Positions 20,801 to 50,892 of a stretch of 64,000 bases of DNA are shown here, one piece after another. The stretch comes from Oculina patagonica (lineage: Eukaryota). Within the stretch, counting starts at the first letter, position 1, and each line of letters opens with the position of its first letter. A model generated the notes under the pieces. It worked only from the letters and a program-made list of their open reading frames with translations, searched no databases and was not told where the DNA came from. The stretch covers positions 26,226,001 through 26,290,000 of the forward strand of contig NC_135766.1 of assembly GCF_052425735.1 (NCBI RefSeq). Direction: 5' to 3'. Position numbers and translations under genes: made by a program.

Positions 20801-22581
20801 TGTGGGGTTCCAGTAAATATCCACACCTAACCCCAGTCTAGTAAGTTCACTGAAAATTCTGAGGGCCAGGAGATGGGGTGGGTGGATATTGATAATATTA
20901 AAGTTTCCTTCCTGACTTATTGTTATGTAATACAAGATGACCTGAAGGGGCAACTGCTGTGTGGAATTGTCAACAGTTCTTACCATTTGGCATGACAAGC
21001 AGGCTCAGAACAAGAAACACGACGGCAAGAGACACAATTCCACTCCATATATTCTCCTCACGAGTAGCAACTGGGTTTCTTAAAAAAAAAAACACCAATA
21101 AAACAATAATGGGAATTAACATTTGTGAATTTGTGACTAAGGGCCTCTTCATACGAGCCTGGTAAACAAGCTGTCTTGTTTACCAGGACAAATTTTGCCG
21201 TCTGTTCATATGTTAAAATTTCAGCAGGATTGACCGGGATGAAATTCAAGAGACAGAACCGAAATAGCAACACATTAAGTTGCATAATTTGTTCGCGACT
21301 GATGTAGATTTACCAAAACTTGCAGCTTTACTTATTTCAACTTTTTTTGAGAAAATAGCTTCCCTTTCGTAACTGGGTGGTCAAAATGGCTTAATTTTGC
21401 CTTGTGTCTATTTCCACTTCAGAAATATGCCAATTAGCTTTATTAATAAAGTTACAAGGGTCAATAAAGCTACGATAGTCACGAAAGATGCAACTTTATG
21501 TGTCGTCATTTTGGCTTCGTTTCTTGAATTTTATCCCCATCAACCGGGCTAAAATTTTCCATATGAACAGATGTCAAAATCCGTCCTGGTAACTGAGACA
21601 GCCCGTAAACCGGGTTCATGTGAAGAGACCCTGAGATATTGGTAACTGGGCTGGCCCGCCTTCTCATATGAACCCATCAAAAAATTTTCAAAGGAAATGG
21701 GAGTGGGCGAAATCTTGGTAACTGGGCCAGCCTGGTAACTGGGCTCATATGAAGAGGCCTTTACGGAGTTAAAGAACAAACTACCAGTAAACAATACCAT
21801 AAAATAACTGACAGGCATCACAGATTTGCACCACGGCATGCTAGATATAATTTATGACTTATTGTGACTTTTTAAAAAGAAAAATATTACAGGAGGTACT
21901 CAAATCATGACCACTGTTTTAAAAAGACAACTTAGCGACCAGCGCACAATAAAAACACCTGTTCTCAGTTACGGGAATATAATATTTCTTTATCATATAT
22001 CAACATTATAAAATCCACCTGTTACAAAAACAACGCAAGACTAAAAAAGTATTTTTAGACCAAGCCATTAACTTTAGAGAATATTGCTACAAAGATCAAG
22101 CACGGGTTGTGAGCGAGACTGATGTCAAGCACGCCGACTCGAGGGAAGCCTTTGTACTGCTTTGTTTTAAAATTCAGTAAAACTACAGCACCGTGGAAAA
22201 TTGATGAATTCAGCAAAGATTTGAATTTGCATGCTACTTCATGTTTTAATCCAGTGAGATAAAAAGATCCCCTTTTCGGTATTTTCTTAATTAAACTAAG
22301 CTATAAAATATCGTAGCTGATCTCGTTAAAGCAAGATGCCGGCCAAAACCGGGCATTTATAGGCGTCGGTCAGAGTAAACACAAGCTTACCTGGTGAAAG
22401 CAGAATATATCAGGTACACAACCAGGCATGCTAAAGCCGTGATTGACCGAGGCTTGTAGAAAAATTCCAGTGAAATATCTTCAACAATCTGTTCACTAGC
22501 ATCTTGATAATCGTCCGTGGAGATTGTGGACGTTGTTGAGAAGGTTCTCTTCCGACGCCGTGGACTTCGATCGTCCGCCAT
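11858..22581 (-). CDS. PTDSS1: Phosphatidylserine synthase 1, 14 exons, about 554 aa
   Basis: Exons 22581-22391, 21078-20984, 20102-20058, 19808-19690, 19214-19056, 18023-17872, 17725-17666, 16591-16510, 16231-16119, 15260-15195, 14785-14686, 14238-14188, 13172-13116, 12232-11858; all GT-AG and phase-consistent. Motifs [61 protein letters not shown] match PTDSS1. Confidence 0.93.
13624..13940. repeat. Interspersed repeat with a 67-bp tandem duplication
   Basis: 13624-13690 is repeated at 13691-13757; related sequence occurs at about 48812-48900 and 49130-49275. Confidence 0.6.
15542..16099. mobile_element. Kolobok-type palindromic MITE in a PTDSS1 intron
   Basis: TTAA|AGGAGAAGTTCACTCCAG...CTGGAGTGAACTTCTCCT|TTAA; arms of about 225 bp. 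Confidence 0.85.
17090..17529. mobile_element. P-superfamily-like MITE with 7-bp TSD
   Basis: 21-bp perfect TIR CAGAAACCCATAAGGGTTGAA; exact TSD CACAAAT at 17083-17089 and 17530-17536. Confidence 0.8.
18551..19015. mobile_element. Possible piggyBac-type MITE
   Basis: TTAA|CCC...GGG|TTAA with short imperfect TIRs. Confidence 0.4.
20137..20700 (+). mobile_element. 5'-truncated Penelope-like retroelement (GIY-YIG C-terminus plus pLTR), antisense in PTDSS1 intron 2
   Basis: 20137-20328 translates to [63 protein letters not shown], resembling a PLE endonuclease C-terminus. An AT-rich tail with a hammerhead core follows. Confidence 0.7.
20621..20670 (+). ncRNA. Minimal type I hammerhead ribozyme motif (Penelope pLTR)
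   Basis: CTGACGA (20628), stem II GTC-TTTT-GAC, GAAA (20646), stem III CTA/TAG, GTC triplet (20662-20664); stem I is degenerate. Confidence 0.6.
21141..21760. mobile_element. PIF/Harbinger MITE, same family as 2338-3140, three-TIR composite
   Basis: TAA|GGGCCTCTTCA at 21141; right-hand TIRs end at 21631 and 21760; internal sequence is homologous to 2642-3140. Another fragment lies at about 19455-19604. Confidence 0.75.
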
Positions 22582-22688
22582 TTTTCATGTAAATTTTTGT
22601 GGGCGGTTTATTAGCTCTCCCCAGTCTCTCTCGTATGTTTACTTTACTCTCCCCAGTTCTTTCTCGAACCCTTTTCGGCCGAAACAAA
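22582..22688. promoter_or_regulatory. Compact bidirectional promoter PTDSS1/RPL11 with TCT/TOP initiator
   Basis: 107 bp between divergent ATGs; TCT motif CCTTTTC at 22670-22676; both ATGs sit in AAAATGGCGG (YY1-like). Confidence 0.7.
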
Positions 22689-25600
22689 ATGGCGGTGAGT
22701 GTCTTCTGTTTGAGAAGTAAAAGCAATCCGTTTACATCGTCCTTTAATTTTTCTAAGACTAGATCAAAGTAAATATTTTCAGTCGCGTAATTATTTTTCT
22801 TTCCATCCAGCCAAATATGTGGGCTTTAGTTTTGTTATTCAGCTTTATACGAGGTATAGTTCAAGAGATAGTTTTTATTCCAATCTTTTTGTATCGTTTC
22901 TCGGTCTTTAAATCCACAAGGTTCTTGTAGACCAACAGAAAATATATTTTTTCTTTTATGATTAAAGTAGTTACTTTATTAATCGCGCTCCTCACTGTTG
23001 CTTATGAACTTTAAAATGTTTCACCGAGATTTCTTATGGCCGGTATCTACGCTTAGCTCATTGAATCAAATAATAAATAGTTAGTTATTTCCCATGTGCC
23101 ATGTGCGTTGTTGTTTGAAATACACTACAAGTATTGAGTATGTCCAGGTTCTCATTTGTGGTGTCAATGCTATAAACCAATCAATGCACTGCAAATAAAC
23201 TTTATTGTGTTAAAAAAAATTACTGATGACTCATAATAATTTTTTTTTGAACTCTAAATTATGATGTTAGTTGCATTATTTATAACTGGACAATGGCAAA
23301 GTACAATTTTAAATTGTCTTTTTCCATCGTTCTCTTATAAATACATGGATGACAAATTGTGATAAAAACAAAATATAAAGATAGCAGTACAATTAATATC
23401 CCTTTGTGAAACTACAACTTGAACATCAACAAGAATTTTTTTTGGTTTAACTTTGGTTTGGGTTTTTTTTTTTGGGAGGGGTGGGGGTTGCTTTAATCCT
23501 GCATTTTTGGATTTGATTTGTACATCCTTTTAAACCTCCCTATCACTTTAAATCCAGAGTACACGCTGGGGCTGCTGGGAGGTGTGTTGGCCTAATGGTT
23601 TGTGCGCCGGACTCCGGATCGAGTGGTCCAGGTTCGAGCCCTGGCTGGGGTCACTGTGTTGTGTTCTTGGGCAAGACACTTTACTCTCTGCCTCTAGGTG
23701 TATAAATGTGTACCGGCGAAATAATGCTGCGGGGTACCCTGCGATGGACTATCAACCCATTCAGGGGAGAAAAGAAATATTCCTAGCTGCTTAATGCTAC
23801 AGAAACCGGGATAAGCACCCGCAGTATGGGCTGCTTGGCTTGAGGCTTCCCTTTAATCGCTTTATTCTACTGAACCCGGGATAAGCTCCAGTCTGATGGG
23901 CCACTAGGCTCGAATGCAGACTTTACCTACCTACCTACTCCATGGGGTTAGTGGCCGTCATGATTTATAAAAGTGTGAAACTAATAATTTTTTTTGGTTC
24001 ACTTTAGGCTAAGGCCAAACAAAATCCCATGAAGGATCTACAAATCAGGAAGTTATGCCTGAACATCTGTGTTGGAGAGAGCGGCGACAGACTGACTCGT
24101 GCTGCCAAGGTTCTTGAACAGCTGACTGGGCAACAGCCAGTGTACTCCAAAGGTATTCCTTTTTCTGCAATCTAGGTTGCACTGTTTTTTAAAAACTATT
24201 TAACTGGTTTGAAATTAAAAGAGGGAGGCAGTGTGGACACATGGTTAGAGGGCTGGGCTCCAAATCCAGAGGTCGCAGGTTTGAATCCCATTCTGACCGC
24301 TAGCGATGTTGTTCACAGCAGTCTCGAGTTCAACTCCTCTGCTAGGGATGTAAATAGCCAACTGGTCTGCCTCCTGCCAGTTGGGATTTTTAACCATGTT
24401 ATGTTCATTTAAAATATTTTTTTCAGCTCTTATTACAATTTGCCCTAAAAGGCCCACTTGGGAAGTGGCCAATTATAATAAGTACCCTGTATTTCATTGA
24501 ATCATCACTCGCTGGTGGCCATTATGCCTGGTCTTGTAAATTCAAAAATGCACATCTCAATAATTTTAAGATGTTCTTTTACAGTAGTTGCTTAAATTAC
24601 TGGTATTGATAGACAACAATATTTTCATTTCAGCTCGTTACACAGTGAGGTCCTTTGGAATTCGAAGAAATGAAAAAATTGCCGTTCACTGCACTGTGCG
24701 TGGTCCCAAGGCTGAAGAAATCTTGGAGAAGGGCTTAAAAGTAAAGGAGTACGAGTTGCACAAAGAGAATTTCTCAGCCACAGGTTAGACTTAGGCAAAG
24801 TCACTGTTAAAATAAAGCGCAGCATGTAGTTTGCATGGTTAGTCACTAGGTACCGATAAAGGTATTATGGACTGTATGGTAAAAAGTTGACCCTGCAGCT
24901 AGCAAATGTTTGTTATAAACTTGATGTTGCTGAATATTTTTTGTAAAAGATCCTGATTGCCTGTAGATCTTGCTTGTAAAGCTCTTGCTTCCAAACTAAA
25001 CCAGCGTCCATATCTCAGGGCTGCAAATAATTTTTTTCACTTGAAAGGACATATGTCCTACTAAGACACCATCTTGGTCGGACAAAACAAAATTGTGGTC
25101 GGCCATCACCAAAAACAAAAGGTTGAATTTCATTCATTGTTGCCGTTAAATAATTAACAATCCAAAAATTGTCTGGACATCATGTCCGACCACACTTGGA
25201 ATTTTGTCAGACATGAGCAAATTTTGGTCCGCCAATGTCCGATGACCGACTGTTTTTGCAGCCCTGATATTTGAAGCAACCAGGAGTACCACTTGGTCAC
25301 CTTGCTGGAACACTGGTCCTTGGCTTCAGTAGCTATCCTTCAGCATTTTTAGAATCGTGCTCATACATTTATTCACCTAAGAGAGAGCTACTGTGCAGTC
25401 CTCAAGCTGGACCAGTCAAAACACTAGTACACTAACCTCTCTTTAGATTACTGTGCCTCAGCAAGTCTGTCACAATAATTGTTATTCATTCGAAAGCTGA
25501 CATTGTGACAGTTCAGATCTCTAGTTCTTTTCAGTCAAAGACTTCATATTCAGGCTCTAACTTCCTTTTTGTATTAGTTTACTGTGGAACCCAGGAAAAA

Positions 25601-26385
25601 GAACTCCTGAATTTTTTATTTTCAATATATTTTTTCATTAATACAGACATGTATTTATTGTTTCAGGAAACTTTGGTTTTGGAATCCAGGAACATATTGA
25701 TCTTGGTATCAAGTATGACCCAACTATTGGTATTTATGGCATGGATTTCTACGTGGTTCTTGGCCGCCCAGGGTTTAATGTAGCAAAGAGAAGAAGAGCC
25801 AAAGCTCATGTGGGTGCCCCTCATAAAATATCTAAGGACGAATCCATGAAATGGTTCCAACAGAAGGTAACAGACAAATAATAGATTCTTATACTTTGCA
25901 TAATCTGGGCAAATGCTGTTGTTTTTTTGTAGGAATCTCATTGCTAATAATCAATTGACTCAATTGGGGGTGCAGCTAATATCCAGTAGTGAGGAAGAAT
26001 TGACTCTGAATTTTTATTTTGAATTGGGAGACTGAATGGGACATCTGAATCAACAAGAAAGGGAAATGACATGTTTTCCCTGTCTTACTTTAAAAGTTGC
26101 ATCATTTTAGCTTTGCAACATACCGCTATTTTTGAAGCTTGTGTTGTGAACTTTTGCATTAGAATCAACAAACTAACATACTCATTTGGCAGTTTTTGTA
26201 TTGCTTGAGAATGCAGACGTACATACAAATCTTTAGTGTGGATACCTCATTATGACTAGAGTGCAATTTACAAAGGTTCTTCTTCTATAAATATATATAC
26301 ATGTCTTTGATGTAAAACTTTTGTTGATTTGGTGTTTTCCTTTGTTTTTCAGTTTGATGGAATCCTCCTTGCAAAGAAGAAGTAA
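22689..26385 (+). CDS. RPL11: 60S ribosomal protein L11 (uL5), 5 coding exons, 177 aa
   Basis: Exons 22689-22694, 24008-24152, 24634-24783, 25667-25866, 26353-26385. Motifs [85 protein letters not shown] at 26402. Confidence 0.97.
23577..23938 (+). mobile_element. tRNA-derived SINE
   Basis: A box TGGCCTAATGG, B box GGTTCGAGCCC, core GTGTTCTTGGGCAAGACACTT, (CCTA)n tail; same family on the minus strand at about 49803-50095 and 41556-41730. Confidence 0.8.
24222..24410 (+). mobile_element. tRNA-derived SINE, second family
   Basis: tRNA-like head GGGAGGCAGTGTGG...TGGTTAG...GGTTTGAATCC. Confidence 0.6.
25016..25266. mobile_element. hAT-like MITE
   Basis: TIR CAGGGCTGCAAA/TTTGCAGCCCTG; internal GTCGGACA-type repeats; imperfect flanking duplication atatct/atattt. 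Confidence 0.6.
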
Positions 26386-28664: not shown

Positions 28665-31600
28665 TTATTCCGCAGTGCTCAGTTCACCCAGGAGAGGTTT
28701 AAGCGCCTTGTTCGATCCTTTAGATGTTCCCATGTAAGACATGATAGCTTTCTTGACGTGATACCGTGACTGCTCTGGTAACACCTTGAGTTCCGTCAGG
28801 TTCATTCGCTGCCAGTCATTCATTGTTCGAGTGTGGTCGTCTTTCATTCTTTTCTGCGCTTTGGTCTCCTTGAGACGATTCATTTCGCTTCTGAGGAAGC
28901 AAAACACGAGGGACAATTATAACTGATATCGTACTGGGAGCCCTGGTACCTACTGGAACGGAATTGCTCCCCTTCGCCTATTGGTCAGCTACGATTTTTA
29001 ATAATGTTTATCACCGCTGTTTGTTTTATATTTCAATCAAGTTAGATGGCCTAGAGTCTATATGGAACGGATCATTTTGCGAGATAAGGTTAAAGTTTCC
29101 TCCTCCTCCCCTCCCCCTCACGACAAACTTTGAGTTTCTACAATCAATGACGTCACCTCCGCGATTTTTTGAGCAGGGCGGAACAGCTGTACACAGGCTA
29201 CAATCACTCAAATAATTAAGCTAATGTTTAGTTAGTGCTGTTTGTTTGAGTGTTTCCCCAATCCAGAATAAATATGCTTATAAAACGGTCAAATCTGTAC
29301 TTTGAAAAGGAAGGAGAGGAGAAGGGGTTATTCGTGAATAATGAAATGATATTTTCTTCCGGGTTTTCTTTATGCAGTGGATCGTTTGGCCCCCAAGCAA
29401 GGCAGAGACAATCTTACCTGAATGGCTGTACATGTGAATAGTTCATGTTAAAATGTTGATATTCTTTTTGTTGGAATCTTGGATATTTTACTTTTGGTAT
29501 CGGAGGGAGCCTGGTGCTTCCCTTGCTGCTGTCTTTGCCAGACACGTTCTTGCTCCTAGAGTGCGGCGAGAAAAAAACGCATTTATAAGAATAAACTTGA
29601 TAGCTTAGTAAGCTCACGAATGTTTTATTTCACGGAATCACTAAGTTGTAACCATCTGAATGTCTTATACTAGAGCAATTTTTGATTGAGTGTCGTAAAT
29701 CCAAACACAAAGTAATTTAAAAAATGTAAGTATTGACTCTGGCCAATCATTATCGACACAGATAATCAAGTAAACCAATAGGAACTCGAAGGTAAATAGA
29801 TGTAACAGTAAAAAACAGGAAAGACAGTGAGTCAAGATTTAGCCTCCCACGCAGTCGTTCTTAGGGGCGATCGTGTTTCGTGGGGAGGAGTGAAACACGA
29901 TGGCCCCAAAGAACGACTGCGTGGGAGGCTAGTCAAGATTGGTCTTGGTTTTACTTCTGATTGGTCGAGAAAGTGTAAGGCGCGAGTGTTTTAAACCATA
30001 CATAAACAGCCAGTCACTAAGGAAAGTAAAGCAAAACCAAATTAAGCGCAAACGTACGAATGACTTTCGGCAATCGGTGAAAATCAATAAGTTTATTTTC
30101 CAAAAAGGATACATACCAAATTTGAGGCTTATAGAAACAGCGGGGTATTACTGAGTCAAATTTAGGGCCTGGGAAACTAAAAAAAAAAAAAAAGTAAAAA
30201 GACAAATTGTTAGTAAGATTTCATTTGCAGTAAAGTAACACACAGTAACTTAAGACATGATATGAGGAATCGACACTTGACAAGAAGACATCCCAATGTC
30301 ACTTACTGATCCATTCTCCAGGATTCATCAGGATCTAATGGTTAAAAACAAAAAAGAGTAACTGTTATTATAAAGTTGTTCATGCATTATTATGATATCA
30401 ATTGCAAAATGACGGGCTTCAAAACTTGCGTTACGTCAAAAAGTTCCTAGCCGTGATGAACCTCCTAGCTCACACAGCCTGCAGTCATAGTTTAACTATG
30501 CTGAGTTGAGGCGTTCTTGGCAAGAACACGTGTATCGCATCAGTCGCTCTTCTCAATTCTTCAAGGAACACTGCAGTTATTGTAGATCTAACTGTTGTTT
30601 CTGGAATGTTCTGACTGCCATACTCTAGTCTAAAATTTTGCAAGAATAAGCGGCGCACTGTTGAGACTTCATTGCTTCGATTTTAGTTTGTCATCTTGCT
30701 GTCAGCCTCAATATTCTGTAGTGATATACTAACCTACAAGCCTGAGAGACGTGGCTCTTGTACCCCACCCTGGACGGGGAACATAATCTACCTGCAAATA
30801 ATAGAAAAGCAAAAAAATCTCATTACAGCGCTAAGATAAAGTACCTACGTGTCAACTTTGTTTTCAGCCTTAACAGAGTTCTTTAATTGGTTCACGAATC
30901 TCTTGCTTCTAAACCAATCAGACAAAAGATGTTACCTTCTTAGCCAATCAAAGGCAAACTTGACGTTTGCGCGCTTGCAAGGAATGTCTTTGCTCCGATT
31001 TTTGAGCTTTCTGTGACAACACCTTGCCAGGAGTCTTGGGATTTGCTTACTTAAATTCTTACAATAATCCGATATGAATAAACAAGGAACTGATCGTTTA
31101 TATCAATTTGTACTAAAATTGATAGTGTAAATTATCGCTGTTTTAGATTTAGTTGATAATTTTAAAAATTATTCCTTCTTCCGGGCAAAAAGGATTTTCT
31201 TTTACAAGGTGTTAACGATCGAAACGTCAGCTGACAGCGAAGACGTACACCTGATGGTCACATGAGTAAAGCTAAGATACAGTACTTATTACCTACCTGG
31301 TCATTTATCATGTAATTTACAATGTAAGTGTTGTAGTAAGGTGACAGGTCATTAAAAATATCCGGAGTGTACGGCTTCCTAAAAAAATTAAAAACGACAA
31401 CAAAATTACTACAAAATACTCTTGTTTGATTGCGGGTGTCTATATGATAAAGTTAACGTGCAAAAAGGAACCACATTATACCGAAATTTCAGTTACACTG
31501 AAATGATGATGATAAGTAAATAAAGGGACTAAAAATGTTTAATAAATTAACACTGAAAATATCAGGCCAAAACTATAGGTACATGAATAACGGAAGTGTT

Positions 31601-32657
31601 TAGAACACTTTTATCTCCAAACCCTCTAGTCTTTTAGCAATACATTTGACTAGTTCATCGACGTTATCACTCACACTTCAGGTTTGCTAACAAGTGTACT
31701 GTTGTCCACCATTTCTTTTTTGACACGTTGTAGTTCACATAGCATCTGAGAGCGCATGCGATTTTCTTCTTTTTCAGTTTCTCTGGGCCCAGATTCTTCT
31801 TCTTCTTCGGGAGCAGCTTTTACCTCTAGAGAAAAAAGGCAACGAAAATGTTTTAGAATGTCATGTCCCACTTTCAAACGAGTTTTTTTGTAGGTAAATA
31901 TATAAGTAAAGCTATAAGTTTTGCGAGGATCGGGGTGAAGCGGCGAGACGATGAGGACCACGCTTTGATTACTGTATGATCGCGCATTGCACACTGCTTA
32001 ATCACTTTTTTCTTTGTAACTAATAAAGTGAACTTTGACTATTGGTTGCGTTGTGAAGAACGGTCTCCAATTTTTTTAGACAGTATTTCAGGGCTTGACG
32101 TTGACAGCATTTAATTTCATTTTTTTAGAACATTATTCAGGCTGTCAATTTTACTTTAAAACTGTAAAGCAATTGAAGTACACAAGAGAGAAGAAAAATG
32201 CCCAAATACAGGCGAACGCAAACAGGCGAAAACTATCATAGAAATTACACCCTGGCACAAGTCTTTTTTTCACACTTGTATGAATTCACGAGTTTCTTTT
32301 AGTTTTATTTTCTTGCAAAGGAAAGCTTTAATATTAGCTAAAACAGTTATTGTTTGTTCTGTGAATCGCCGACAAAGAACTTCTAATTTGTGCACGTTCT
32401 ACGGGAATTGGAGTGCTTGATCACCAGAGTCACGGGAAAAGTTGAACTAATGTATTTTGTTGACAATAGTGAAAACTTTGCGGATGTTGTTTCTGTTGGC
32501 AAGAAGCTGTGCAGCGCTTTTATTAGCTAGATATGTTTAACAAGTCCATGAATGTAAACATTTATCAATTATCGTATAACTACTGATTGTGGACACATTA
32601 AACTCTCATTACAGATCTGAACATGCCTTTACCTTGTTGAGTCTCTTCTTCGGCCAT
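28665..32657 (-). CDS. Uncharacterised protein, paralog B, 7 exons, about 235 aa (candidate ciliary gene)
   Basis: Exons 32657-32633, 31825-31675, 31378-31297, 30791-30734, 30334-30307, 29555-29418, 28890-28665; phase-consistent GT-AG; exon-by-exon homology to paralog A. Confidence 0.85.
29671..30085. mobile_element. TAGAGC-family MITE (degenerate) with a nested insertion
   Basis: Homologous to 35471-35755. Confidence 0.6.
29840..29931. mobile_element. 92-bp hairpin MITE, TAG..CTA termini, 9-bp TSD (AcademH-like)
   Basis: TAGCCTCCCACGCAGTCGTTCTT...AAGAACGACTGCGTGGGAGGCTA; exact TSD GTCAAGATT. Confidence 0.85.
30486..30500. mobile_element. Putative P-type excision footprint (15 bp)
   Basis: CATAGTT+TAACTATG; degenerate TSD ctgcagt/ctg-agt. 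Confidence 0.45.
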
Positions 32658-32953
32658 TTCTGATTGTAGCTGGAAGAACTACTTCGGCGTCCTACGAAGA
32701 AATAACTTTGTTTGAGCTAAAAGCGTTCTTTGCCAAACAGCCCTTTGTTGCAGTATCAATTTCAATGTAAACTAGCGAAGGACTTGTGTTATTTGTTTGG
32801 ACTGAAAAGCGAAAACATATCTCTTAAAACTTATAGTTATTTGAACATCAGTACTTACCCAAACTAAAGCAAATAACAAAAAACTTTCGCAGGGATCTTG
32901 CGTTTGTGTAAAAAAGTTTGTCAAGTCACTAAGCTTGTGCGGAATATTGCTTG

Positions 32954-32967
32954 GTTTCTATGGAGAT
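32954..32967 (-). promoter_or_regulatory. RFX X-box upstream of paralog B
   Basis: ATCTCCATAGAAAC (minus strand) fits RTHNYYWTRRNRAC; about 300 bp upstream of the ATG and about 100 bp upstream of a putative 5'UTR donor at 32859. Confidence 0.5.
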
Positions 32968-33210
32968 TACAGTACGGACTGGTCCCTTGGCGCTGTTACA
33001 GTAATTATGAGGGAATATTTGCATATCTATCGAAAAGTGATTAAGTATGCAAACAATAGAGAAGTGTGCTTACACTTTTGTTTAACCGCAAACACGTTTT
33101 ATTTATCTTTGAAAGCGAATACCTGTATCATTTCATTTTGAACTTAAATCAATCGCAGTTCGCAATTTTTTCACAAAAAAAAACATAACGCGAAATTAGC
33201 TGCATGGGAG

Positions 33211-33230
33211 CATAGTTACCACTAACTATG
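33211..33230. mobile_element. Putative P-type excision footprint (20 bp)
   Basis: CATAGTTA-CC-ACTAACTATG flanked by exact 7-bp TSD ATGGGAG. Confidence 0.7.
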
Positions 33231-34066
33231 ATGGGAGTCGTTTTCAGTTATAATTCCAAGCACGTGATTTCTCTCTAGCATTCAGTCAAATACTTTCTAA
33301 AAAATCGAGGGGCAAATCTATAACGAACTGAAAATGGGTCGCAGACTTCCCAAACCATGTACAAACATCATTTTGTTCAGTAAGATCTTTTCTCAAGTCT
33401 GCTTAGGATGTGAATAGTCCAATTGTGCGCCAGTTTCCAAAATGGCGAAAAAAAAAACGAACTGACAAAAACGCAAACTGGCCAATTTGAAAGAGTAGAA
33501 AATGTTTGCTACGTTTCGCAAACTTTTTAATAGAGAAAAAAGAAACAATTTGAATTCACAGCCAAGTCAAAAACACCAGAAACAAAAATAAAACTCACTC
33601 AAACATCACTCTTTATTAACACCTCTGAACTATATGATACAGTTGCACGTTCAATATCTGCCTAACTACACCTATTTACACTTACATGAAAAAATAAAAT
33701 TAAAAGAAAATCTTTCTAACTTTAATGCAATCTGCATTTAATTTTAAATTTCTTTGTTTTTTAAAAAAACTATTAATGTCAAACGCAATGTGTTTAAAAT
33801 TTTGTGTAAAATGAATTGAATTTTCTTGGTAAATGGCTGGAACAAACACTCCTTTCAGTCCGGGAACAAGCGCCTAGTGAAGCATTCAAAGGGTTTCCGA
33901 TTCTTGTTGTCCAATCACAAAACAATAGCACGACAGCATCACGTTGCGTAGCAACCTCTCTGACCAAAAACGCGGGCTCACTCATTTCTTCGACCATAAA
34001 GGTGCTTATTCTGCTGGCTGTTCTAATCATAATGAAAGTGAATTTCAACACGCAATTTGACAAACT

Positions 34067-37000
34067 TTACGACTGTGAGATTGGCGTAGGAGTGGATGCG
34101 TCCAGTTGTTTGGTCAGCGGCTTAAGTGCCTCGCTTGACCCTCGGGACGTCCCGAGATAGGACACAATGGCTTTCTTGATGTGGTATCTCGGACTGGGAG
34201 GAAGTTTCTTCAATTCAGACAAGTTCATTCGATTCCAGTCCTTGACTGTTCTGTCATAATCCGCCTTTGCTTGCTTCTCAGCTAGAGCCTCGTAAGTGTT
34301 GGTGAGATCAGTCCTGCAATAAGTGGATAATTCACTGTTGATGTAAAATACTCAAGCCTGGGGCAGTTGGGTGATGATACTGGAAGTGAATCTGTGGAGG
34401 TATCCCTACTGGGTGATGGGGAGAGGAGAGAGATGAGTGAGTGTGATGATGATTGGTTGATGACTGAATGATGATTGATTGATTGACTGATAATTGATTG
34501 ATTGATTGATTGACTGATTAATGATTGAATATTGATTGATTGATTGATTGATGAGCCTCCCACAAGCCTTCTTTCTTTTAAGTAGGGAGAAGAGGGCAGA
34601 AGGAGGGAAAGGGGAGCTTGTTCCCATCAAAAATTTGGATCAGTCAATAGCTAATGCTTATTGCATGAAGAAATAAGTTGGGATCCGATCAAAATAAAGG
34701 TAAATTGACCCCTGAAATGTTCAGTGTCAGCGTATTTCATACCTGAAGTTGGCTAACTGGTCATACGTCATTTTGTGAGGCTGATAATGTGATTGGTTGA
34801 ACTTTGGAAAATTTGGCATTGGTAAAGGAGGGAGCCTGGTACTGCCATGTTCATTACTGGACCGTGACAAATTTCTACTCCTGAAAAAAAGAAAAAAGAA
34901 ATGTTCAACGAAAGTCACTGTGACAGTGATAGACTTGCCTACAAGTTGAGCTCACAGAGCGCAAAGCGTGAAAACCAAAAAAATTGGACTCCTCGATCTC
35001 GGGTCTTCTAAAAAAAGCGAAGGAGGGGTGGGGCTAGTATTGAGAACTGAACTTCATAGTGAGCACCCGGACACTTAAATCTAAAATCTACCAGCTCTAA
35101 TGCTTCTTCTATCATTCTCTGTATATCCTTAAATACTTATATATGTATTCAAGTGAAAATGCCAGGTGCCTCAAGCAGTAAATAAGGTAATGACATTTCC
35201 AAAGTTTGTTACGAAAATAAATATCTTATTCTGAAAGGCTTGCAAAAGAAATAAGGACGAAAGTGACCATGGCCACTATCTTGAAGTTATCTTGATATTC
35301 TATGGATAGAAAAAACATAAAAGAATATATTAACATACCATTCAGCTGACTGGAAAAGCCTTCCAGGCAGTCTTGAGTGAGGAACTGGATTGGGAAAGCT
35401 GTCAAAAGTAAGATACAGGTTGACAATGGATGTTAGGAAAACTTAGGTAAGTTAAATTGAATCAAATAAATAGAGCAGTTTTCAATTGAGTGTCGTAAAA
35501 CCAAAACCAAAGTAATTACTCTGGCCAATCACAATGGACACAGACAATCCAGTGAACCAATCAAAACTCAAAGCAAATACATGTGGCTGGCAGGAAGCGC
35601 GGGAAAATGTGCGCGAGCGAGTCGCGATTGGTTTTGGTTTTAGTTCTGATTGGCTGAGAAAGTGGCGTGAGATTTTTAAGTCAATCACTGAGCGTAGTTA
35701 TGCAAAACCAAAGCAAACGCAATTTACTTTCGACACTCAAGTGAAAACCGCTCTAACAATGATACTTACTTATCCAGTTTCCAAGAGATCTCTGGATCTA
35801 AACACAGGGAAAAAATTAATATACGATTTATATTAATTACATTTTCTTTTATTGTACTCGAAAACTCAAAAAGTGATATTTAATTTTTTTTATATTAATT
35901 TTTATATTTTATAATAACATCTTATGTATTTTCTCCTGACTTATTTGCAAGAAACTTAAACATCATCAACTACTCTATATTTGTTTCACAGGACTAATGT
36001 TTTGATGAAATTCTGGAAGGAACACTAGTATGGAATGGTCAATCCAAGAATTTACCATTTATCGGTAATTCAAAATTATGATTCTCAGAATTTAAGACTT
36101 GATTCCAAATAAATTATTTTTAAAAAAGCAAAGATTTGTTGAGACCATCAGCTATACCCCTAGTGAAGACGAATATATTGGAGAAACTAAAAAGTTTATG
36201 TTATTGCCTAAGAATGCCCTTTGACAACTACCGGTAAGTGTGAGAAGCAGGAACTTATTAGGAACTACACTAATGGAAACATAACATGGAAGACGTCATT
36301 TCTTACCGACAACTCCAAGTGCTGTTGGTCTATGTCCATAACCTCTAACATGTGTTATTTCTTCCTGTTAAAGAGGAAAACAGCCAAACCAAACATGACT
36401 TTTCACTTTAAAGTTTCGGCTAACGACAATAACGTATAATTTTTTGGTTTGCGATCCTCAGTCCCTGTACTCCCATTTCCCAGTAAAAAAAATAGGTAAA
36501 TCTCTAAAGCTCCCGGCCCCTCTGATTCGGTTCACATTTTAAGACTGTTAATTAGAACACTCAGTTAACTTTTTTATGACTGACGTTGAAGGGAAGATAC
36601 TCATCATCTTCATCATTACCTGTTGAAGATCTTGGATTGTGCTGTTTACCATATACCGGTTGTAATAAGGCGACAGGCTGTTAAAAATATCAGGAGTAAA
36701 TGGCCTCCTGTAGAGAAAAATTATAATTTAATTATAATTTGCATGTGTCATCTTGCGTAACTCCCAGAATTTTAAATGAAAATAGCACAAATTATATGCT
36801 GCTGAATCTGGGCGTGTGTTAATTCTGGTCAAGTTTGACATTTTTCCTGATAAAATGTTTCTCTTTTGAGAAAGTTTAAAATTCACATTTCAATTTAGAA
36901 AATTAAAATAATGCTTTTCTGGGTAAACATACAACATCCAATATTTAACCATGGGGATCACGCTTTGCCTAATATTTTACCATTCACAAATCTCTTTATT

Positions 37001-39430
37001 ACAGAAATAAAAAACGCACCCGGGTGCATTGTTGAGTTATTTAAGCATGCGGGAATTTTTAAGAACACGAGAGAAGTGCATAGAGAAGCACGAGGCGAAG
37101 CCGAGTGCTTCTCGCACTTCTCAAGTGTTCTTAAAAATTCCCAAGTGCTTATATAACTCAACAATGCACAAGGAGAAAGTTTTTTATTTCTTTTATGAAA
37201 TGTTGAAGAAATTGCGCGCGCTAAAACTCGTGACCTAAGCAGCGTGCATTATAACTCAATAAAGCACGCACGTGACGTATGCAGCGTGCTTTATGGAGCT
37301 ATAATGAAGTCAAACTGACCAATCACAGCGCGCGCAATTAGTCAGACATTTTATAATACCCCATCAACGCCCCGCCGTCCCATGGCAACTTTTTTATCTG
37401 AATCTGCTCCTGAATGGTATTAGACAGATATAAGAGCTAAGGGTAATAGATGTCCCAGTACAGTAGTACCAGGTGCCTAAAACATTGTACATCATCTCTC
37501 ACTTCCCCTTCCACTGAGCCCTCTCTAGAACAAATCTACTTACACTGGAGGTCTGTGAATTGATTGTTGAAATTCAACCATCTGAGTCTTCAGTCTGTTC
37601 AACTCTGCTACCATTTGCTGTGTCTTTTTGTCAAGGCGTGTGGAAGCTCTGGAGCTAGTGGGCTTAGAGGATCCCTTGTCCCTCTTGTCTGTGTGCCCAT
37701 TTGTCTGTTTGCTTTCTTCACCTGCTTTCTTTGCATCGCTTCTTTTTTCTTCACCTTAAGGAAAATATTTAAATGTATGGTTTCAGATAATATCCATACC
37801 CACCCCATGGAGGAACATTGGAAGATCTGAGGGGGGGGGGGGGGGGATCTCAAAAGCAAAAGGGCCGCCGGAGCCGCACCCAGGAGACGGGGGGAGGAGA
37901 GGACAAGGGAGCCGGAGGGAGCACCACGGACCCACACCCAAAGCCGCCACGACGGACCGGCACGACGAGAGGAGGGCAGGCCCCGCCAGACCGGGGCGGG
38001 AACGGAGAAGGGGCGCGAGAGGCCCAATGACAGCCGGGGAGGAGAAGAGCGCGACAGGAGAAGGGAGAAGAGGGAGGAGGGGAGGAGAGAAGGGACCCGC
38101 CGGCCGCACCACGCACGGAGCCGAAGGAGGGAGAAGCCGCACCCGAGAGCCCAAAAGGAAAAAGGCGGAACACGAGTTACGGTATTTCAAAAGAAAGTAT
38201 GAGCTAAAACAGAATTTCTGAAGGGGTGGGGTTGGGGGATACAACCAAAAAAACCTTTATACCTACATGGTGGGGGTATGGATTTTTTCTGGAACAACAG
38301 AATAACAAAGACATTAATTTAGTTCTTCTAGATCGTCTGGGTGTGAAAATTTTCTTGACTCTGAAGATGACTTCCACTCAGGTTGTCAAAATATCAGTCA
38401 ACAACAACAATAATTATTTAATATTCTTTTTAGAACTACCCTCAACGAGATGATCACACTAGATGAAGTACACTCCTGGGCTCAAACCAACTACTATGAA
38501 GAAAACTCTTGAAGGAAAATACAAAAGGGGTAATTCAGCAATATTAAAGGGGTAGGCCACCCAGCTGTGCTTATGCTACTCATAATTTTATTATTTCAAC
38601 TGATCAGCATTCACTGATCAAAATAATGTTTCACTCAACTGTTAACTGACATGCATTGTATTTCAAAAAGCTTTGTAATAATCCTGAATATGATGATTAT
38701 ATTGGACTCATGAAACTTCTAATTACTTTCAAGAGTTAATTTTCAATTCAAGGATTGTGTGTATTCATGACCATGCATCTTCTTCCTAGATCCTGTTATG
38801 AAATTTGTAAATTTTCAAAGTACCCCGGAAATGAATTGTATTTATAGGTTCTTATTCGGTTTATCGATGCACCAGTAGCGCTTACAAACAAGCTTACACA
38901 AAAGCTTGGCCTTTATCAGGATCTGTTTTGCCGAATTCATGATCACAACATAACACACATGTCAAGTTAATTTTTTTTAGATCTTCTGGTCTATAAAATT
39001 TCAAATCTCTAGCAAAGTGTTACAAGGCGAAAAGAATTCTACAGAACGTGTATATGCAAATACATCAAGCTTTCATGACCTGTGTGAGTTAATCGGTGTA
39101 ATTAGCGACTTTACTCACTTTAGCTCAATCGCGCACGAAATTTCACAATGGCGCTGCTCGGATGCACGAATGTTGTTGTTGAAACTTGAAGTACACTTAT
39201 CTTTATAATTGTCAAAGTCTAAACGGCCTGGATTTAAAATTTTGTTTCTTGTATATCATTCAATTCATATGCATTTCCGAAATGTGACTTTTCCTATAAC
39301 AAGAAGCTTTGCGCAATTTTACGAGATATCAATTACCAGTGGTGGCTTTTGTATCATGGATGCCTTCTTCTTCATTAACTTCTTTGGCTTCTTGCTTTTC
39401 TTCGTCGTTGTGGTCTCTCTCCTTTTCCAT
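34067..39430 (-). CDS. Uncharacterised protein, paralog A, 7 exons, about 287 aa (candidate ciliary gene)
   Basis: Exons 39430-39337, 37754-37544, 36707-36620, 36364-36307, 35797-35770, 34880-34743, 34313-34067. Shares TPDIFNxLSPYYN, GSTRLPP and DWxRMNLxELKxLP..RYHxKKAIxSYxGTSxGS with paralog B. Confidence 0.85.
34440..34553. repeat. (GATT)n microsatellite
   Basis: Imperfect tetranucleotide run. Confidence 0.9.
35471..35755. mobile_element. TAGAGC-family MITE
   Basis: TIR TAGAGCAGTTTTCAATTGAGTGTCG / CGACACTCAAGTGAAAACCGCTCTA. Confidence 0.75.
38325..38495 (+). mobile_element. Penelope/retrozyme-like repeat with decayed hammerhead
   Basis: gact-CTGAAGA-tgac..gtc-AAAA-tatc-agtc at 38358-38399; the GAAA core has apparently been lost by CpG decay. 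Confidence 0.45.
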
Positions 39431-39761
39431 AGGAACAAAATTAGAAAACGTTTCAATGCAGTGTAAAGTCTAATAGCCACAAAGCTGGCTCAAAGTCATC
39501 CCCAAGAGAACAATTAAGCTGAAAAGCTTCTAAACAATAACTTTCTTTGATGCGAGAGTCTCAAAGGATTTTCCAAATTAAACATAGTTTCGGTCATCTT
39601 ACCTCTGTGTCGCTCATTGTATCGGAATTAAAGGAATCGCCGCTAAAGTTTGTTACAAGGCTGTGTTTTAAAATCCAAACGAAATTGTGAATATTTATGC
39701 TGGCTCATAGAATCATGCAGCAAATTAGAAGTAATCGAATAAGGTAAACGAACCTGATCCT

Positions 39762-39775
39762 GTTTCCATGGCAAC
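39762..39775. promoter_or_regulatory. RFX X-box upstream of paralog A
   Basis: GTTTCCATGGCAAC, a canonical X-box; about 330 bp upstream of the ATG and about 160 bp upstream of a putative 5'UTR donor at 39602. Confidence 0.65.
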
Positions 39776-41791: not shown

Positions 41792-42408
41792 TCAACAAGA
41801 AGTTTCTCTGGTAACGAGGGTCTCCAGCACCATACACAGCTCACTAAACTTTGGTCTGTCATTAGGAGACGCCTGCCAACATTTTGTCATCACTTCATAG
41901 CTGAAAAGAAAAACACGAAGCGTTAGTTTTGCGTTTGCTGTTTACTGTCATTGGTTTAAAAGAACTCTTGCAACCAACCAATCAGTGTGTTTGTTAGCCA
42001 GCACGCGAATTTTCCCGCGCTTGGTACCGGTAGCACGTTTTTGCTTCGCGCGTTTTGATTGCTTTATTATGTTTCTTTGTGTTTGTTATTTCTGGACAGC
42101 GGTAATTATTTTGGTTTTAATTTGGTTCTACGAAACCGCTTTTTGAATAAACTGAAAATATAACACGATAAGTGCTGTCATGTTAGCCTGTATAAACAGC
42201 TGAAGCAAGTATTTTGGTGGTAGAGTATAAGGTGAAAATTGAATTAAAAAACTTACATGACGCTTGAACTGTTCACAGGTTTCTCCATTCTGTGTCCAGA
42301 CTTGAGACTTTGTAAAAGATCTTTTGTCTGAATCTCAGGGTAAGGAACAGCGCCTAAAACGTTAATACAGCATTACACCGTTTACACCGCGTTGACATAG
42401 AATATCAT

Positions 42409-42452
<44 letters not shown>

Positions 42453-45400
42453 AAGCTGCCCTTTTAGCGCCAGGTGATGCAAAAGGCCTCATCCATTGAC
42501 AAAAAATTACGTCAGTTGTAATTACACCAAAAAATTCCGTACTGAGGACGTGAATCAACAGTGTTTCTTATTGGTTGTTGCTAGGTAATGAATTTTCGCG
42601 CGCAAGTGGCAACCAATCGGAGAGATCACATAGGCCTATACAGTTCCACATCACCAGTTTGGAATCTTGGGTGAAATTACAGACTGAAGAATCACTCCCG
42701 GAGGATCTGAGTAAAATACAATGTTTGATTTACAGTAACCAGGGACAAACAGACAAAGCCGTTTCACTTACCTCCAGTTTCAATCTCCCATAGAAGAACA
42801 CCAAAAGACCAACTGCGATTAAAAAAGAAACCACTTTTAGATGACAAACTTTAAACAAACAGTACTTTTCAAGTGAGCCCGGTTGTTCCAAGGCAAATAT
42901 TACAAATTTAATCAAAACTCACACATCGCTTTCAGATGAGAAAGTCATCGATTCTAAAGTTTCCAGAGCCATCCACTTTGCTGCTGTCAACTTCCCCTTC
43001 AAAAAATAAAATTATATAAAAAATAATAAAAGAAAAAGGTATTGTGGATACTCGTTTACAAATCGGAAGTATATACCGAGTGCTTGCCATGTAAAAAATT
43101 ATCGTTAAATAAAACGGTCCTTTCACAATCCACGGAAAATGAAATGTTTTATACCCGGGGTGATATCATTGCATCAAAAATCTTACAGGCAAGAGAAGGT
43201 TTCAATCTACTAAAATTAGTGTGTCGTCTCTGACTAAAAAGGGCATGAAGTGCTTTCTCTTTTAGGTGATCAAGTGAGATTTAAAAATTTCCTGAAGAAG
43301 ATATTTTGGTTCCTAAATAAGTATAATCTTGTACAACATCAATTGTTTGTTTTTTCCATATAAAATACATGTTCAGAACATTTTTTTGCACGTGTTTGAA
43401 AAACCATTATCTTGGTTTTTTGGGATTTACGCTCAACATCCACGTGTTGCAGTATGTATCTAATGTGTTAAGACAGTTTTGCAGACCTGTTTTGGAACGT
43501 GATAAAATAATTAAATCAGCATATAGTAGAGCGTTTAATTTTGCACCGTTTGGTAGAACAAAAGGATAATAACATCCAGAATTTTACATTCCTATCAAGT
43601 AAAATATGAGTTAACAATCAACAAATTAGAGAATCATAAAGTTTTCGTATTTTATTTAAACTTACACTTGAAATGTCCTCATGGAACGTCTGATCATGAA
43701 TGTCACGTGAGCAGCCAATGTTGGTAACCTTAGCAACACTGTTTTTACCAAGACAAACGTTCCTTGCTGCAAGATCCTTGTGAATGCACTGTCAGGGGAC
43801 AAACAACGAAGAAGAACGTTTTTAGTTTCTTGTTTTTGTATATGTGCAACACAGCTAAACTAAGCGCCTCGAGACAATATTGTTCAAGTCGTAATAGTAT
43901 TGTATTGTAAAATAAAGTATTGATGAATAAGAACTTAAAATGTAAAGAAAGAAGTTTAAGGTTTATCGAGTTACCCCTTTTTCAGCTATATGCTTCATTC
44001 CTTTAGATACCCCTAGAGCGATCCTAAGTTTTTCCACTTTTGATAAAGTGCACACTTTTTGAGTGGAGTTTGTTTCGTCATTCGCCTGGTTTCGTTGAAG
44101 ATAGTCCAATAGATTCCCATGTTCTGCTTCTTCAAATACGAGATACGTAGGGCCTGGATCGAGTAAACAGAGTCAGACGGTTAATGTAGAGTTTATATCG
44201 TGTCAATTAAAATAACTTAAGTATGAAACTGGGATAAGGAAAGCCAATCGCCTTTGCCTTTAGCAGCGGGGATGTTTCGATCGTAAGAACAAAGAATGTT
44301 AAGTGGTTGCATTCAGCCTTTTTATTTTTCCATTCTAAAGAAACACGCAGAAGAATGAAGGTAACCAGGTGCTAGCTACTCTCCTTTTTGTACCATTTTG
44401 TTGTTAATCCTTCTTTTTTACATAGATCAAGAGATTATTTTTCAGTGTTTGCAAACAACTGAAAACAATATTATTTGACCAATAAGGTATAAATATCAAC
44501 CAATGTTAATTATGCAGCATTACAGTCAGGGGCTTGAGTGTCGAAAAAATGAACAAAGTATTAAACTGAAAGAGCTGTCGTTGATCCAATTACATGTGGA
44601 AGCTAAAGTGGCAATTTGAAATATTTTCCCTCACAAGAACAGCAAACGTTTTCCGTTAGAAAATTATTAATGTAATGTAGCCTTGTTTCTGTCAATTAGT
44701 GTTGCTCCTTGCCCCCGTGACGCATACAAACACTAACACAAACCGCAATACTTTGATCTGGTTTCTTTGTTTTTTCTTTTGGAGGGACGAGGACTCCTCA
44801 GTGTACATAGGTACCAGACCTCCGCGTGCTCACCTTTAATAGTACAAGCTCCAAAGAGGTTCAGTATGTTTGGATGGCTTCCCAAGCCGCTTAAGATTTT
44901 AAGCTCGGCTAACAGATCATTTACATCATCTAATGATCCACTTTCCTCAATGTAAAACTCTGCAAAAAGTAATTCTGTTAAGCAAGTCAAACAAGTTACT
45001 TGAGCCTACACAGTGTAATCTTCAGAAAAAGTACAAGTAACGAAATAAGTATCTGAAATAACAACAATGAACACTATTATTAAAATGATGACGATGATGA
45101 TAGTATGTCACATCAACTGAGGTAAAATGTTACTACTGAAATTGTTCTAGATTATTTTTAATTTCAATGGATTAGTCTTTGTGTAATATTTTCAATACCA
45201 CCGCTATAACTTTGAACAAAAAGAATCTAAGATGGCAAAATCGTGCTACAGTGCAACAGGTTTAACGAGTTTACTCTTCTCCCAAATTGTGTTGCGTTAT
45301 ATTTTCATTTAATACTGTAGTTGTAAAAGTTGTGTGAGGCCCTGCCAGGGGGGTTCGCGTGTCGCTTGTCTAAATTTAAAAATGTGCCATGTTGCTATTT

Positions 45401-48400
45401 TATCAAACTCCGCGTCGCTGTCGGTAGTAAAAGTGAAGGAAAATTACTTGCCCTTGTTGGAATTTAAGTTTTTCCAGATAGACGTCATTTGTTGTGATTT
45501 TATTTTTTGTTCTTTTGCTACTTTTTGGGCCAAGTCGCTTGTCGGAATTTACCCTGGGGCCTCTGTTGTCAATGACGTTTTACTGGTGAATTAAAATGGA
45601 GTCGCACTCCAATCCAACCTAGTCCCAGGGCTTTTTTCCCTTCCATCCTTGGACGAGATTGACTGTAAGTGCACTGAAACTGAAAGCGTGATCCCCACCC
45701 ACCCTCTGTAGCTACAGAAATAGCCTTCTTTTTCGTCTCTAGCGCTACCATATCACAGTGTTCGGTAAACAGGGCAGCATAGACTTACCCTTTGTCGTTT
45801 TCACAATGCAGTTTGCCATGTTTCCATTTTCCAGGCAAAGTTTCCCGTGAAATGTTGCTCCGTCAGACTCGGTCCCAATCTTCTCTCCTAGCGTGAGTTG
45901 TTCTCTTGAAATCTCGCACCAGTCTATCTCGTCGTTACCCTCGGTATCTAATTTAACATGGTAAGAGGAGTCAGCTCTCTGGAATCCTGGATTTGTTTGC
46001 CCGGTTTCTGTGGACTAAGAAAACTACGTTGTGATCTACGAATCAATTTCACTGAACAAACAGTGAAACATGGCCCGCTGTCACAGGGCGCGGGCCCCCC
46101 GGCGAGACGGCCAGCGAGAGGGCGCAGCGCGACAGACGAGAGGACAGAGGGAGGGCACGGGGCGAGACCCCAAAAGTTATTATTATTATTATTATTATTA
46201 TAGTGATCGAAAAAATAACATTTATGAATGTTAGAATCTCAGGTTGTTAGCTAGATTCCTTGTGACCATTTTATTTTGACCGAAAGCGGGGAATCGACCA
46301 TGAAAAATCCTGCTTTAGGATGTAACGTTCAGTGTAAGGTTTAACTTGCAATGCACTTCCACTGTGCAAGGCTGTCCAGGGGGGAGGTATATATACCAAT
46401 ATATCTTCACAAAACAACAACAAACAATTATCTAATACATCCTAAATTTCCCCCAAAACGCCCAAAAATATCCGAGAAAAGAAGATAAGAAATGATAACA
46501 TAAAATGTCTACGTACGAGGCTAACTTCACTCATATTCACGAATTCTCTTCTGAAGTCGTGTTCTCCTCTCTGTTTCCGGTAACACCGGAAGTAGAACGC
46601 GAAAACCAAGATCAGAAGTATAGCACCACACGCCACAGGGAGACCAATTTTCAGGGCAGTGTTCAGACTTGATTTTTCTAAAAAATAATTCATGAATTCA
46701 ATGAACTGAAGGCAATCTACTGAATCCTAAACAAGTTTAAAGCTTGTGAAAAAAAAAACAGTTTTACATGTACTGCGTTGGTGGCCAAAAATTAAATTAT
46801 TTTCGTGTTGAATCGCGCCACAATTTTCCACCAAAAGTATTTCATATTAAATTTGATGTCTAACCTGTGTTTTTAGCTGTTTCTCCCGTAGAAGGCGTAT
46901 TTGTGGAGCTACCTGAATGGCACAGAAATAGAAACAAACTTTAGATATACCCTGTGTAACATTTACTAAGAAGGTCCAGACTCAGTGATGTTTTATTGGT
47001 GCGTTCCCGAAGAAAGGAATTTTCTATATTTAGCCTATGCGACTTCCATCCTACGTCGACGCTCGCATGCTATACTTTTTTAGAGCTAAGAAACACGGTT
47101 TCCAGCTAATCACAACGAATATTTTCTATTGCAGTTGTGAGGTTTGATCATTCTTGATTGCATACTGGCCTGTTTGCTTCAGCTCATAGCTTAGCGTCAA
47201 TAACGCAGTGCTTAATGTACAGCAAGTTTTTACTTACTTGAGTGTTCAACCCGACACACCACGCCAGCGTCATTATCGTGGTCCCAGTAGATGCCTGCTA
47301 TTCTGGGCCAGGAGCATTCCCATAATGACTCTTCATGTCCCTGGCATTTAAGGTCTGAAATCCAAACAGGACCTTTTCCTTTTCCAAAGGGCCCCACAGT
47401 GGACAATATGGCGGACTCGGCTCCTGGGTAGCCCAGTTCTCTACATGCCACGTTTGAGGTGTTGAGATTCCAGCCTCTATTCCGGATTGTACCCCAGACT
47501 CCAGCAACGAAAACTTCCACACGGCCAGCAAAAGTCACATTTCCGCCAGCGAGCCTGATTTTCTTGACTATTAGAGCAATAAAAAAGTAATATGAAAAGT
47601 TTCATGAAAGTTTAGTTTTCATATTAAATTTCTAAACTCGTCAAGTTTAAACAAAGGAAATCATAACCTTCCTCAGTCGTATGGCCTGCTTCTCCATAGA
47701 AAGCGAGATGGGAACACCGTCATCATTCCCCTCTCCGCAGTCGAAGGTGAATGTGTGCTCATTCCCGTGCCGGTGTCGTCACCTGCGTCGCAGCGAGTGA
47801 AGATGAGGGAGAGGCCCACCGCCGACGCACCCGAGAGACGACGCGCGGGCGTGGGGCCAGCGCGCCAGTGGAGCGGAGCGACCGCGGGGAGGGGCCCGGC
47901 GTGAGAGGGGCGCGGGAGCCACCAGGAGGAGATGGGAGGCCCGAGGGGGACGGGCGAGGAGGCGGCGGACGACCAGGACGGGAGGCGGACGACGGGGAGA
48001 GAGAGCCGCGGGGCGAGCAGAAGGAGGGGACGCCCGAGGACGACGGGGAGAGGACAGCGGGGAGAGAGGCCGCAGGGCCGCGAGGACGCCCCCGGGGACG
48101 GCCGCGACCGCGCGCGGGAGGGGAAGGGGGAGACCGGGGACACGCGCGGGACAGGGGACGCCGGAAAAGGCAGAGGACCCGCCGAGCAGAGAGGCCCCCG
48201 CGGCCGAGGACAGCCCGCGCGGGCAGAGGGGGGACCGAGGAGACAGGGGGTGGTTAAAGGTTAGTTGGATGGAGGGAGATGCTGTGTAGCGAGAGGGATG
48301 AGGATGTTAATTGTGAGTGCTGCCTTCGAGATGTTGTTAGAGAAGTGGTAGGGGTTGAATTGTATGCATGCTCGTTCGGGTCTAGAAGTGTTCTACATAG

Positions 48401-48775: not shown

Positions 48776-48806
<31 letters not shown>

Positions 48807-50842: not shown

Positions 50843-50892
<50 letters not shown>

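Follow-up and report, generated by a model that had tools for sequence, protein, structure and literature searches.

What do two neighbouring genes of the stony coral Oculina patagonica do, when their products belong to no named family and their promoters carry a site for RFX transcription factors? The genes, here called A and B, lie in tandem on the minus strand of a stretch of 64,000 nucleotides (RefSeq assembly GCF_052425735.1, contig NC_135766.1, positions 26,226,001 to 26,290,000; referred to below as the window, in whose numbering coordinates are given). A preliminary description of this stretch had pointed to an X-box, the site bound by RFX factors, in each promoter and had proposed the pair as a candidate new ciliary or flagellar family. 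The analysis presented here leads to an answer in steps of decreasing firmness. Genes A and B arose by an ancient tandem duplication within a eumetazoan protein family that has no name. This family is very probably a genuine RFX target, RFX control being well supported by the position of the site, its conservation and the outcome of the controls. For the proteins themselves a ciliary or flagellar role, argued from RFX control, has about even chances.

The evidence for RFX control comes from a comparison of promoters. An X-box-like 14-mer with at most one mismatch was looked for between -500 and 0 of the ATG in 11 promoters, namely those of genes A and B of Oculina, Desmophyllum, Nematostella and Actinia (using a corrected start codon for Actinia A), of gene A of Exaiptasia, and of the family genes of Lytechinus variegatus and Branchiostoma lanceolatum. 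Such a site was found in 11 of these 11 promoters, and in 11 of 12 once that of the brachiopod Lingula had been added (seven species in our tally). Since these loci have a background of 0.117 hits per 500 bp, or a chance of about 0.11 per promoter, the binomial tail amounts to 3e-10 for all promoters, to 2e-8 without the two from Oculina, and to 1.5e-6 when Desmophyllum, whose promoters can still be aligned to those of Oculina, is left out as well. With the same pattern, hits were obtained in 0/11 control windows at -1000 to -500, 1/11 at -1500 to -1000, 3/11 at +100 to +600 and 1/11 at +600 to +1100, and none of 300 column-shuffled patterns reached more than 6 of the 11 promoters. Conservation of the X-box in orthologous promoters, which the preliminary description had put forward as a check, is thus borne out with flanking windows and shuffled patterns as negative controls. 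The consensus of the 11 sites is GTTGCCATGGAAAC, which is near the canonical RFX palindrome; the only feature common to all of them is the RFX half-site pair GTnnCC..GGnnAC at a fixed spacing. All A-type sites are located 272-319 bp upstream of the ATG. Discovery of exact 8-mers over the 11 promoters gave nothing above shuffled controls, so that no second shared motif was detected by a method that is too crude even for the degenerate X-box.

The sites in Oculina were scored against the 14-bp patterns GTHNYYATRRNAAC or GTNRCCNNRGYAAC, with 0 mismatches for gene B and 1 for gene A. The site of gene A is situated approximately 300 bp upstream of the ATG and some 30-45 bp upstream of the observed 5' end of the transcript; its counterpart in Desmophyllum reads ATCACCATAGAAAC. 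That of gene B is found 145-158 bp upstream of the ATG at 39617 and corresponds to ATTTCCATGGAAAC at -151 in Desmophyllum. A distance of 300-330 bp had originally been given for both genes, in the case of B from a start codon at 39430. In C. elegans, the X-boxes of ciliary genes are often located 100-250 bp upstream of the coding sequence (PMC2873420). The genome of Oculina has matches to the RFX DNA-binding domain PF02257 at about seven loci, with a best E value of 4e-22.

The window contains six perfect GTHNYYATRRNAAC sites where about 0.25 would be expected. An inverted repeat of 216 nt (window 3795-4414; arms 88 % complementary) holds the words at 3830 and 4366, one in each arm. Because two of the six sites are repeat-borne, the count in the window proves little on its own, and these two are no evidence of RFX control. 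The earlier caveat that X-box-like words also occur in local repeats is thus correct for 3830 and 4366, but does not extend to the promoter sites of A and B, since each promoter piece occurs just once in the genome (529 Mb). Further perfect matches in the window are included in Table 1.

Table 1 Features of the A/B locus and its surroundings in the window
Feature	Position	Strand	Remarks
Gene A	28665..32924	minus	ACROYT_G032073, P0051, 255 aa; coding 28665-32657
Gene A, coding exons	32657-32633, 31825-31675, 31378-31297, 30791-30734, 30334-30307, 30176-30117, 29555-29418, 28890-28665	minus	Model identical to P0051
Gene A, non-coding 5' exon	32858..32924	minus	RNA contigs, runs X1 and X23
Gene A, X-box-like site	32955..32968	minus	ATCTCCATAGAAAC on gene strand; one mismatch to GTHNYYATRRNAAC
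Gene B, coding region	34067..39617	minus	ACROYT_G032074, P0001, 309 aa; model identical to P0001
Gene B, coding exons	39617-39603, 39421-39337, 37754-37544, 36707-36620, 36364-36307, 35797-35770, 35398-35339, 34880-34743, 34313-34067	minus	
Gene B, probable 3' untranslated region	33718..34066	minus	RNA contigs over 33718-33987 and 33958-34082
Gene B, X-box	39762..39775	minus	GTTGCCATGGAAAC on gene strand; perfect match to GTHNYYATRRNAAC
MITE-like element in gene A	within 29671-29990		270 bp
MITE-like element in gene B	35471-35740		270 bp
Hairpin in gene A intron	29840-29931		40-nt arms; inside MITE-like sequence
Near T-free stretch	37851-38176		Gene B intron
Near T-free stretch	47934-48250		SRCR-kinase neighbour
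Synteny neighbours	19005-26376 and 41792-52223		
Further perfect X-box matches	59147-59160 and 62416-62429		

The gene models were obtained by reading the minus strand and setting the splice sites by frame and GT-AG rules. The first models, with seven exons each, gave open reading frames of 235 and 287 amino acids, which are 49 % identical over 202 amino acids (BLASTP E 2e-71). The annotated proteins of both genes were recovered in an exhaustive HMMER search with the last exon of gene B, and the translations of the corrected models are identical to them. Gene A has eight coding exons, preceded by one that is non-coding, and gene B has nine; all splice sites conform to GT-AG, the phases are the same at all shared introns, and exons of 58, 28, 60 and 138 nt occur at equal length in both genes. 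The 60-nt exon, of phase 2 on both sides (30176-30117 in A, 35398-35339 in B), had been omitted from the seven-exon models, which remained open because this exon is in frame. Residues homologous to it are present in the Nematostella protein P0010 and in other members of the family. Gene B starts at 39617 and not at 39430, with a first coding exon of 15 nt (MSDTE) that is kept in Desmophyllum. Of the initial picture of two seven-exon genes, the paralogous pair and the matching phases are real, while each model lacked the 60-nt exon and that of B also the 15-nt exon; the conserved protein blocks listed at the time are all there.

Genes A and B are both spliced and transcribed. The sequencing runs were taken to be RNA on the strength of the spliced forms present in them. 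CT..AC joints were seen at six of the seven coding introns of gene A in RNA contigs from three runs; the joint 30176/30307, which adjoins a skipped repeat, was not among the RNA joints listed. The joint 29554->30116 occurs in contigs of runs X1, X5 and X6, and the 60-nt exon of gene A is therefore used. An intron in the 5' untranslated region of gene A spans 32691-32857 (joint 32690->32858 in X1 and X23). An X1 contig breaks off at 32924, where Illumina adapter letters follow, and the poly-A raw reads have no depth past 33000, which places the start of the gene A transcript at or shortly upstream of 32924. The last intron of gene B is spliced in X1 and X6 contigs; a loose end at 34316 runs on into the letters of exon 8. 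Word depth over gene A was approximately 500-600 in X1 as against 6-10 in X5 and X6, and its expression is thus strongly sample-dependent.

The introns of A and B are unrelated, as had been noticed from the start, except for a 270-bp element resembling a miniature inverted-repeat transposable element (MITE), which is located in the equivalent intron of both genes and had escaped the first comparison. At least 1,829 first-look candidates for this element were found in the genome at 95-96 % identity; given this high copy number and identity, the insertions in A and B are recent and independent. Within the MITE-like sequence of the gene A intron there is a hairpin, over which repeat-derived RNA contigs pile up to a word depth of 770-2,400. 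Two stretches of about 320-340 nt, located respectively in a gene B intron and in the neighbouring SRCR-kinase gene, are almost devoid of T (3 T in 341 nt and 0 T in 317 nt). Both are rich in G, A and C and have no similarity to one another; noise from assembly or base calling might account for them, or else an unusual repeat.

The duplication that gave rise to the pair is old. In a maximum-likelihood tree the cnidarian proteins form one clade, within which an A clade (support 100/98) and a B clade (99/98) can be distinguished, each containing sea anemones as well as stony corals. The duplication consequently took place before the crown of the Hexacorallia and after the split from the bilaterians. 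The bilaterians sampled have one family gene in the loci fetched. Comparison with Desmophyllum gave ratios of nonsynonymous to synonymous substitution (dN/dS) of 0.09 for A (149 codons) and 0.14 for B (210 codons), at a dS of about 0.58, and both copies are under purifying selection. The tree support and these ratios agree with the early claim of an old duplication with selection on both copies.

The tandem order B then A is also present in Nematostella, Exaiptasia, Actinia and Desmophyllum, and is followed in each by RPL11 on the opposite strand. Actinia and Desmophyllum have an SRCR-kinase gene upstream of the pair, as is the case in the Oculina window. The order SRCR-kinase, B, A, RPL11 (opposite strand) and phosphatidylserine synthase is kept partly or wholly in Oculina and the four other hexacorals, with the phosphatidylserine synthase end seen in Nematostella and the SRCR-kinase end in Actinia and Desmophyllum. 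In Lingula, too, the family gene stands tail-to-tail with RPL11, and this small synteny block may therefore be older than the split between cnidarians and bilaterians.

Profile searches revealed members of the family in Anthozoa, including an octocoral, in all echinoderm classes, in hemichordates and in three Branchiostoma lineages, as well as in bivalves, gastropods, a brachiopod, a bryozoan and a nemertean; entries from rotifers came up by fold. The members are labelled as uncharacterised or bear composition-driven names ('myb-like protein X' or 'chromatin assembly factor 1 subunit A-like', for instance). Neither single exons nor full-length members gave a match above the gathering threshold in Pfam-A. 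PLAT domains were seen in just one member, the brittle-star model P0068, where they precede the family region. In this protein of Amphiura filiformis and in the rotifer entry A0A813S1M4 of AFDB, the family region is predicted to form the C-terminal part of a longer protein with N-terminal PLAT/LH2 domains, which is either a real fusion in two phyla or the product of merged neighbouring gene models. A search of the literature by 13 accessions of family members (a Strongylocentrotus RefSeq id, six gene ids and six UniProt ids) found no paper in the library covered.

An AlphaFold2 model of the full-length protein, built on an alignment of 34 sequences, has a mean predicted local distance difference test score (pLDDT) of 69. 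It consists of a disordered, acidic N-terminus, an amphipathic helix at 24-51, two short helices at 71-84 after the motif PYTPDIFN.L.PYYN, and an extended middle part of low confidence that carries DPEVSWRMD and GSTRLPP.P, short and invariant aromatic/proline motifs. The C-terminal four-helix domain is predicted with confidence and, when folded alone, reached a pLDDT of 82.5. Fold searches of the PDB with the full model and with the C-terminal domain (Foldseek, VIA-align) returned only generic helical matches or hairpins, or family members, at Z scores of 6 or less; the full model retrieved only family members or generic helical hairpins from AFDB Swiss-Prot, the AFDB clusters and the ESM Atlas. 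The initial statement that the proteins have no recognisable domain is thus upheld by the Pfam searches and by the sequence, profile and fold searches of the PDB. The suggestion that A and B form a heterodimer finds no support: the predicted complex scored 0.00 with a chain pLDDT of about 35, which speaks neither for nor against binding.

Several observations weigh against a place for the family in the cilium. Vertebrates, arthropods and nematodes yielded no member in searches that were bounded by word seeding and length windows and thus not exhaustive by taxon, and in this the family is unlike core ciliary genes. A search of the PDB chains, solved axonemes and the sea urchin sperm doublet 8SNB included, with an urchin member and the family profile gave nothing beyond noise at E<=1; this was judged by sequence and concerns assigned chains, so that unassigned densities are possible. 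The out-of-sample promoter of Lingula did not pass the X-box test in its strict form, and no more than the half-site GTTTCCATGGACGC is present there, at -124. By the same criterion, IFT20, IFT57, BBS5 and CFAP77 of Oculina have no X-box in the stretches read, in which some start codons are uncertain, and RFX factors are known to drive non-ciliary targets as well. In favour of the ciliary reading, a perfect X-box, GTTTCCATAGTAAC, was seen at about 28203980, 178 bp upstream of the ATG of CFAP20 (contig C4, near 28203802), a bona fide axonemal gene. With four of the five known ciliary genes lacking it, the X-box is no general mark of such genes here and the control is weak; for the same reason its near-universal retention in the A/B family is the more notable. 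The lack of the site in these four genes could also mean that the palindrome serves another factor, or is a core-promoter element, in a family whose function is unrelated to cilia. Several of the sites do have one mismatch and some hold TTCN4GAA-like words that could fit other factors, but TTC..GAA is missing from most orthologous sites whereas the RFX half-site pair is in every one of the 11, and neither shuffled patterns nor flanking windows reproduced the signal, all of which makes this explanation quite improbable.

The main rival is an RFX-driven role outside the cilium, for instance in neural or secretory differentiation, in germ-cell nuclear events or in the cell cycle, with the protein acting as a cytoplasmic or nuclear scaffold. 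Conservation of the X-box shows RFX-type control only, and the non-ciliary targets of RFX factors, the absence of the family from solved axonemes and the failure to find a vertebrate member all fit such a role. The names that the charged, low-complexity N-termini attract might seem to favour it too, but they reflect composition and not homology, Pfam being empty. Every lineage with the family has motile cilia, while arthropods and nematodes, in which no member was found, lack motile epithelial cilia. The best-documented RFX regulon of invertebrates, moreover, is ciliary (PMC2873420), and on balance the non-ciliary role is rather unlikely, although it has to be reckoned with. A third explanation keeps the family in the cilium by regarding it as a far-diverged offshoot of CFAP77, which is a microtubule protein at the outer junction of the ciliary doublet. 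In a language-model search of the ESM Atlas, the only named clusters near Nematostella P0010 are CFAP77, at a weak score of 0.77, and doublet-microtubule chains appear among the top non-significant Foldseek rows of the full-length model and, two of them, at ranks 9-10 with the C-terminal model. These doublet rows have E>1 and a template-modelling (TM) score of about 0.1, however, and the CFAP77 chains in the PDB (8snb_4N and others) are not the ones listed by Foldseek. In addition, the Pfam family CFAP77 (PF14825) has no match at E<=1 in six members, and Oculina possesses a separate CFAP77 gene on contig C1 (62.9 bits) without obvious likeness to the family. Membership in CFAP77 was rejected on the different PDB chains, the missing Pfam match and the separate gene, and is highly improbable.

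A ciliary or flagellar role, then, is favoured because the RFX regulon of invertebrates is chiefly ciliary, and is held with caution because of the absence from solved axonemes, as judged by sequence, and the lack of a vertebrate member in the searches. According to the mechanism proposed, an RFX dimer would occupy the imperfect palindrome a short distance before the transcription start. Ciliated epithelial cells, spermatids or both would in this way turn on A and B along with the ciliogenic programme. In the cilium or flagellum the proteins might then have a structural or adaptor function without being enzymes, and they may lie along a microtubule or some other filament. In its widest form the proposal is a tentative one, whose chances fall a little short of even: a previously undescribed family of cilium or sperm-flagellum proteins would go back to the cnidarian-bilaterian ancestor, would have been under RFX control since then and tail-to-tail with RPL11 in cnidarians and a brachiopod, would have been duplicated in hexacorals, and would have been lost, or have diverged beyond recognition, in vertebrates and ecdysozoans.

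If this is true, the family would be a lineage-restricted axonemal or basal-body component of the cilia of marine invertebrates that is out of sight of vertebrate-centred ciliome studies. Lists of cilia genes have been compiled mostly from vertebrates, flies, worms and Chlamydomonas, and a family that is absent there, yet has kept its X-box from corals to amphioxus, would mark a blind spot. Corals rely on ciliary flows and on broadcast-spawned sperm, and a ciliary role would add to motile cilia or sperm a component specific to marine invertebrates, reef corals included. The A/B family also offers a clear-cut example of a cis-regulatory site that has persisted for more than 500 million years. 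Nematostella and the sea urchin, in which knock-downs and tagging are available along with single-cell atlases, lend themselves to a direct test of the hypothesis.

Among known systems, the A and B proteins resemble microtubule inner proteins and other small filament-lining proteins of the axoneme, such as CFAP77 (PF14825), in that they are small, have no enzymatic domain and carry short invariant aromatic/proline motifs in an extended region between helices. This is a resemblance of style only, as there is no significant similarity in sequence, profile or fold. The X-box of CFAP20, at 178 bp, is comparable in position to that of gene B at -145 to -158, although CFAP20 is an inner-junction protein of defined structure that is conserved universally, whereas the A/B family has no solved or named relative. 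From the genes of the ciliary regulon of RFX factors (DAF-19, dRFX, RFX1-3), A and B differ in that they belong to no known ciliary family, that their RFX control is predicted from sequence and that no member was found in vertebrates, fly or worm. The family itself is unnamed and without a Pfam entry, while a candidate ciliary gene marked by an X-box is an already known kind of thing. With that regulon A and B share a promoter-proximal imperfect palindrome of 14 bp that matches the X-box consensus, lies near the transcription start and is kept in position across orthologues. A position-conserved X-box near the start is the criterion by which new ciliary genes have been screened for in C. elegans and Drosophila.

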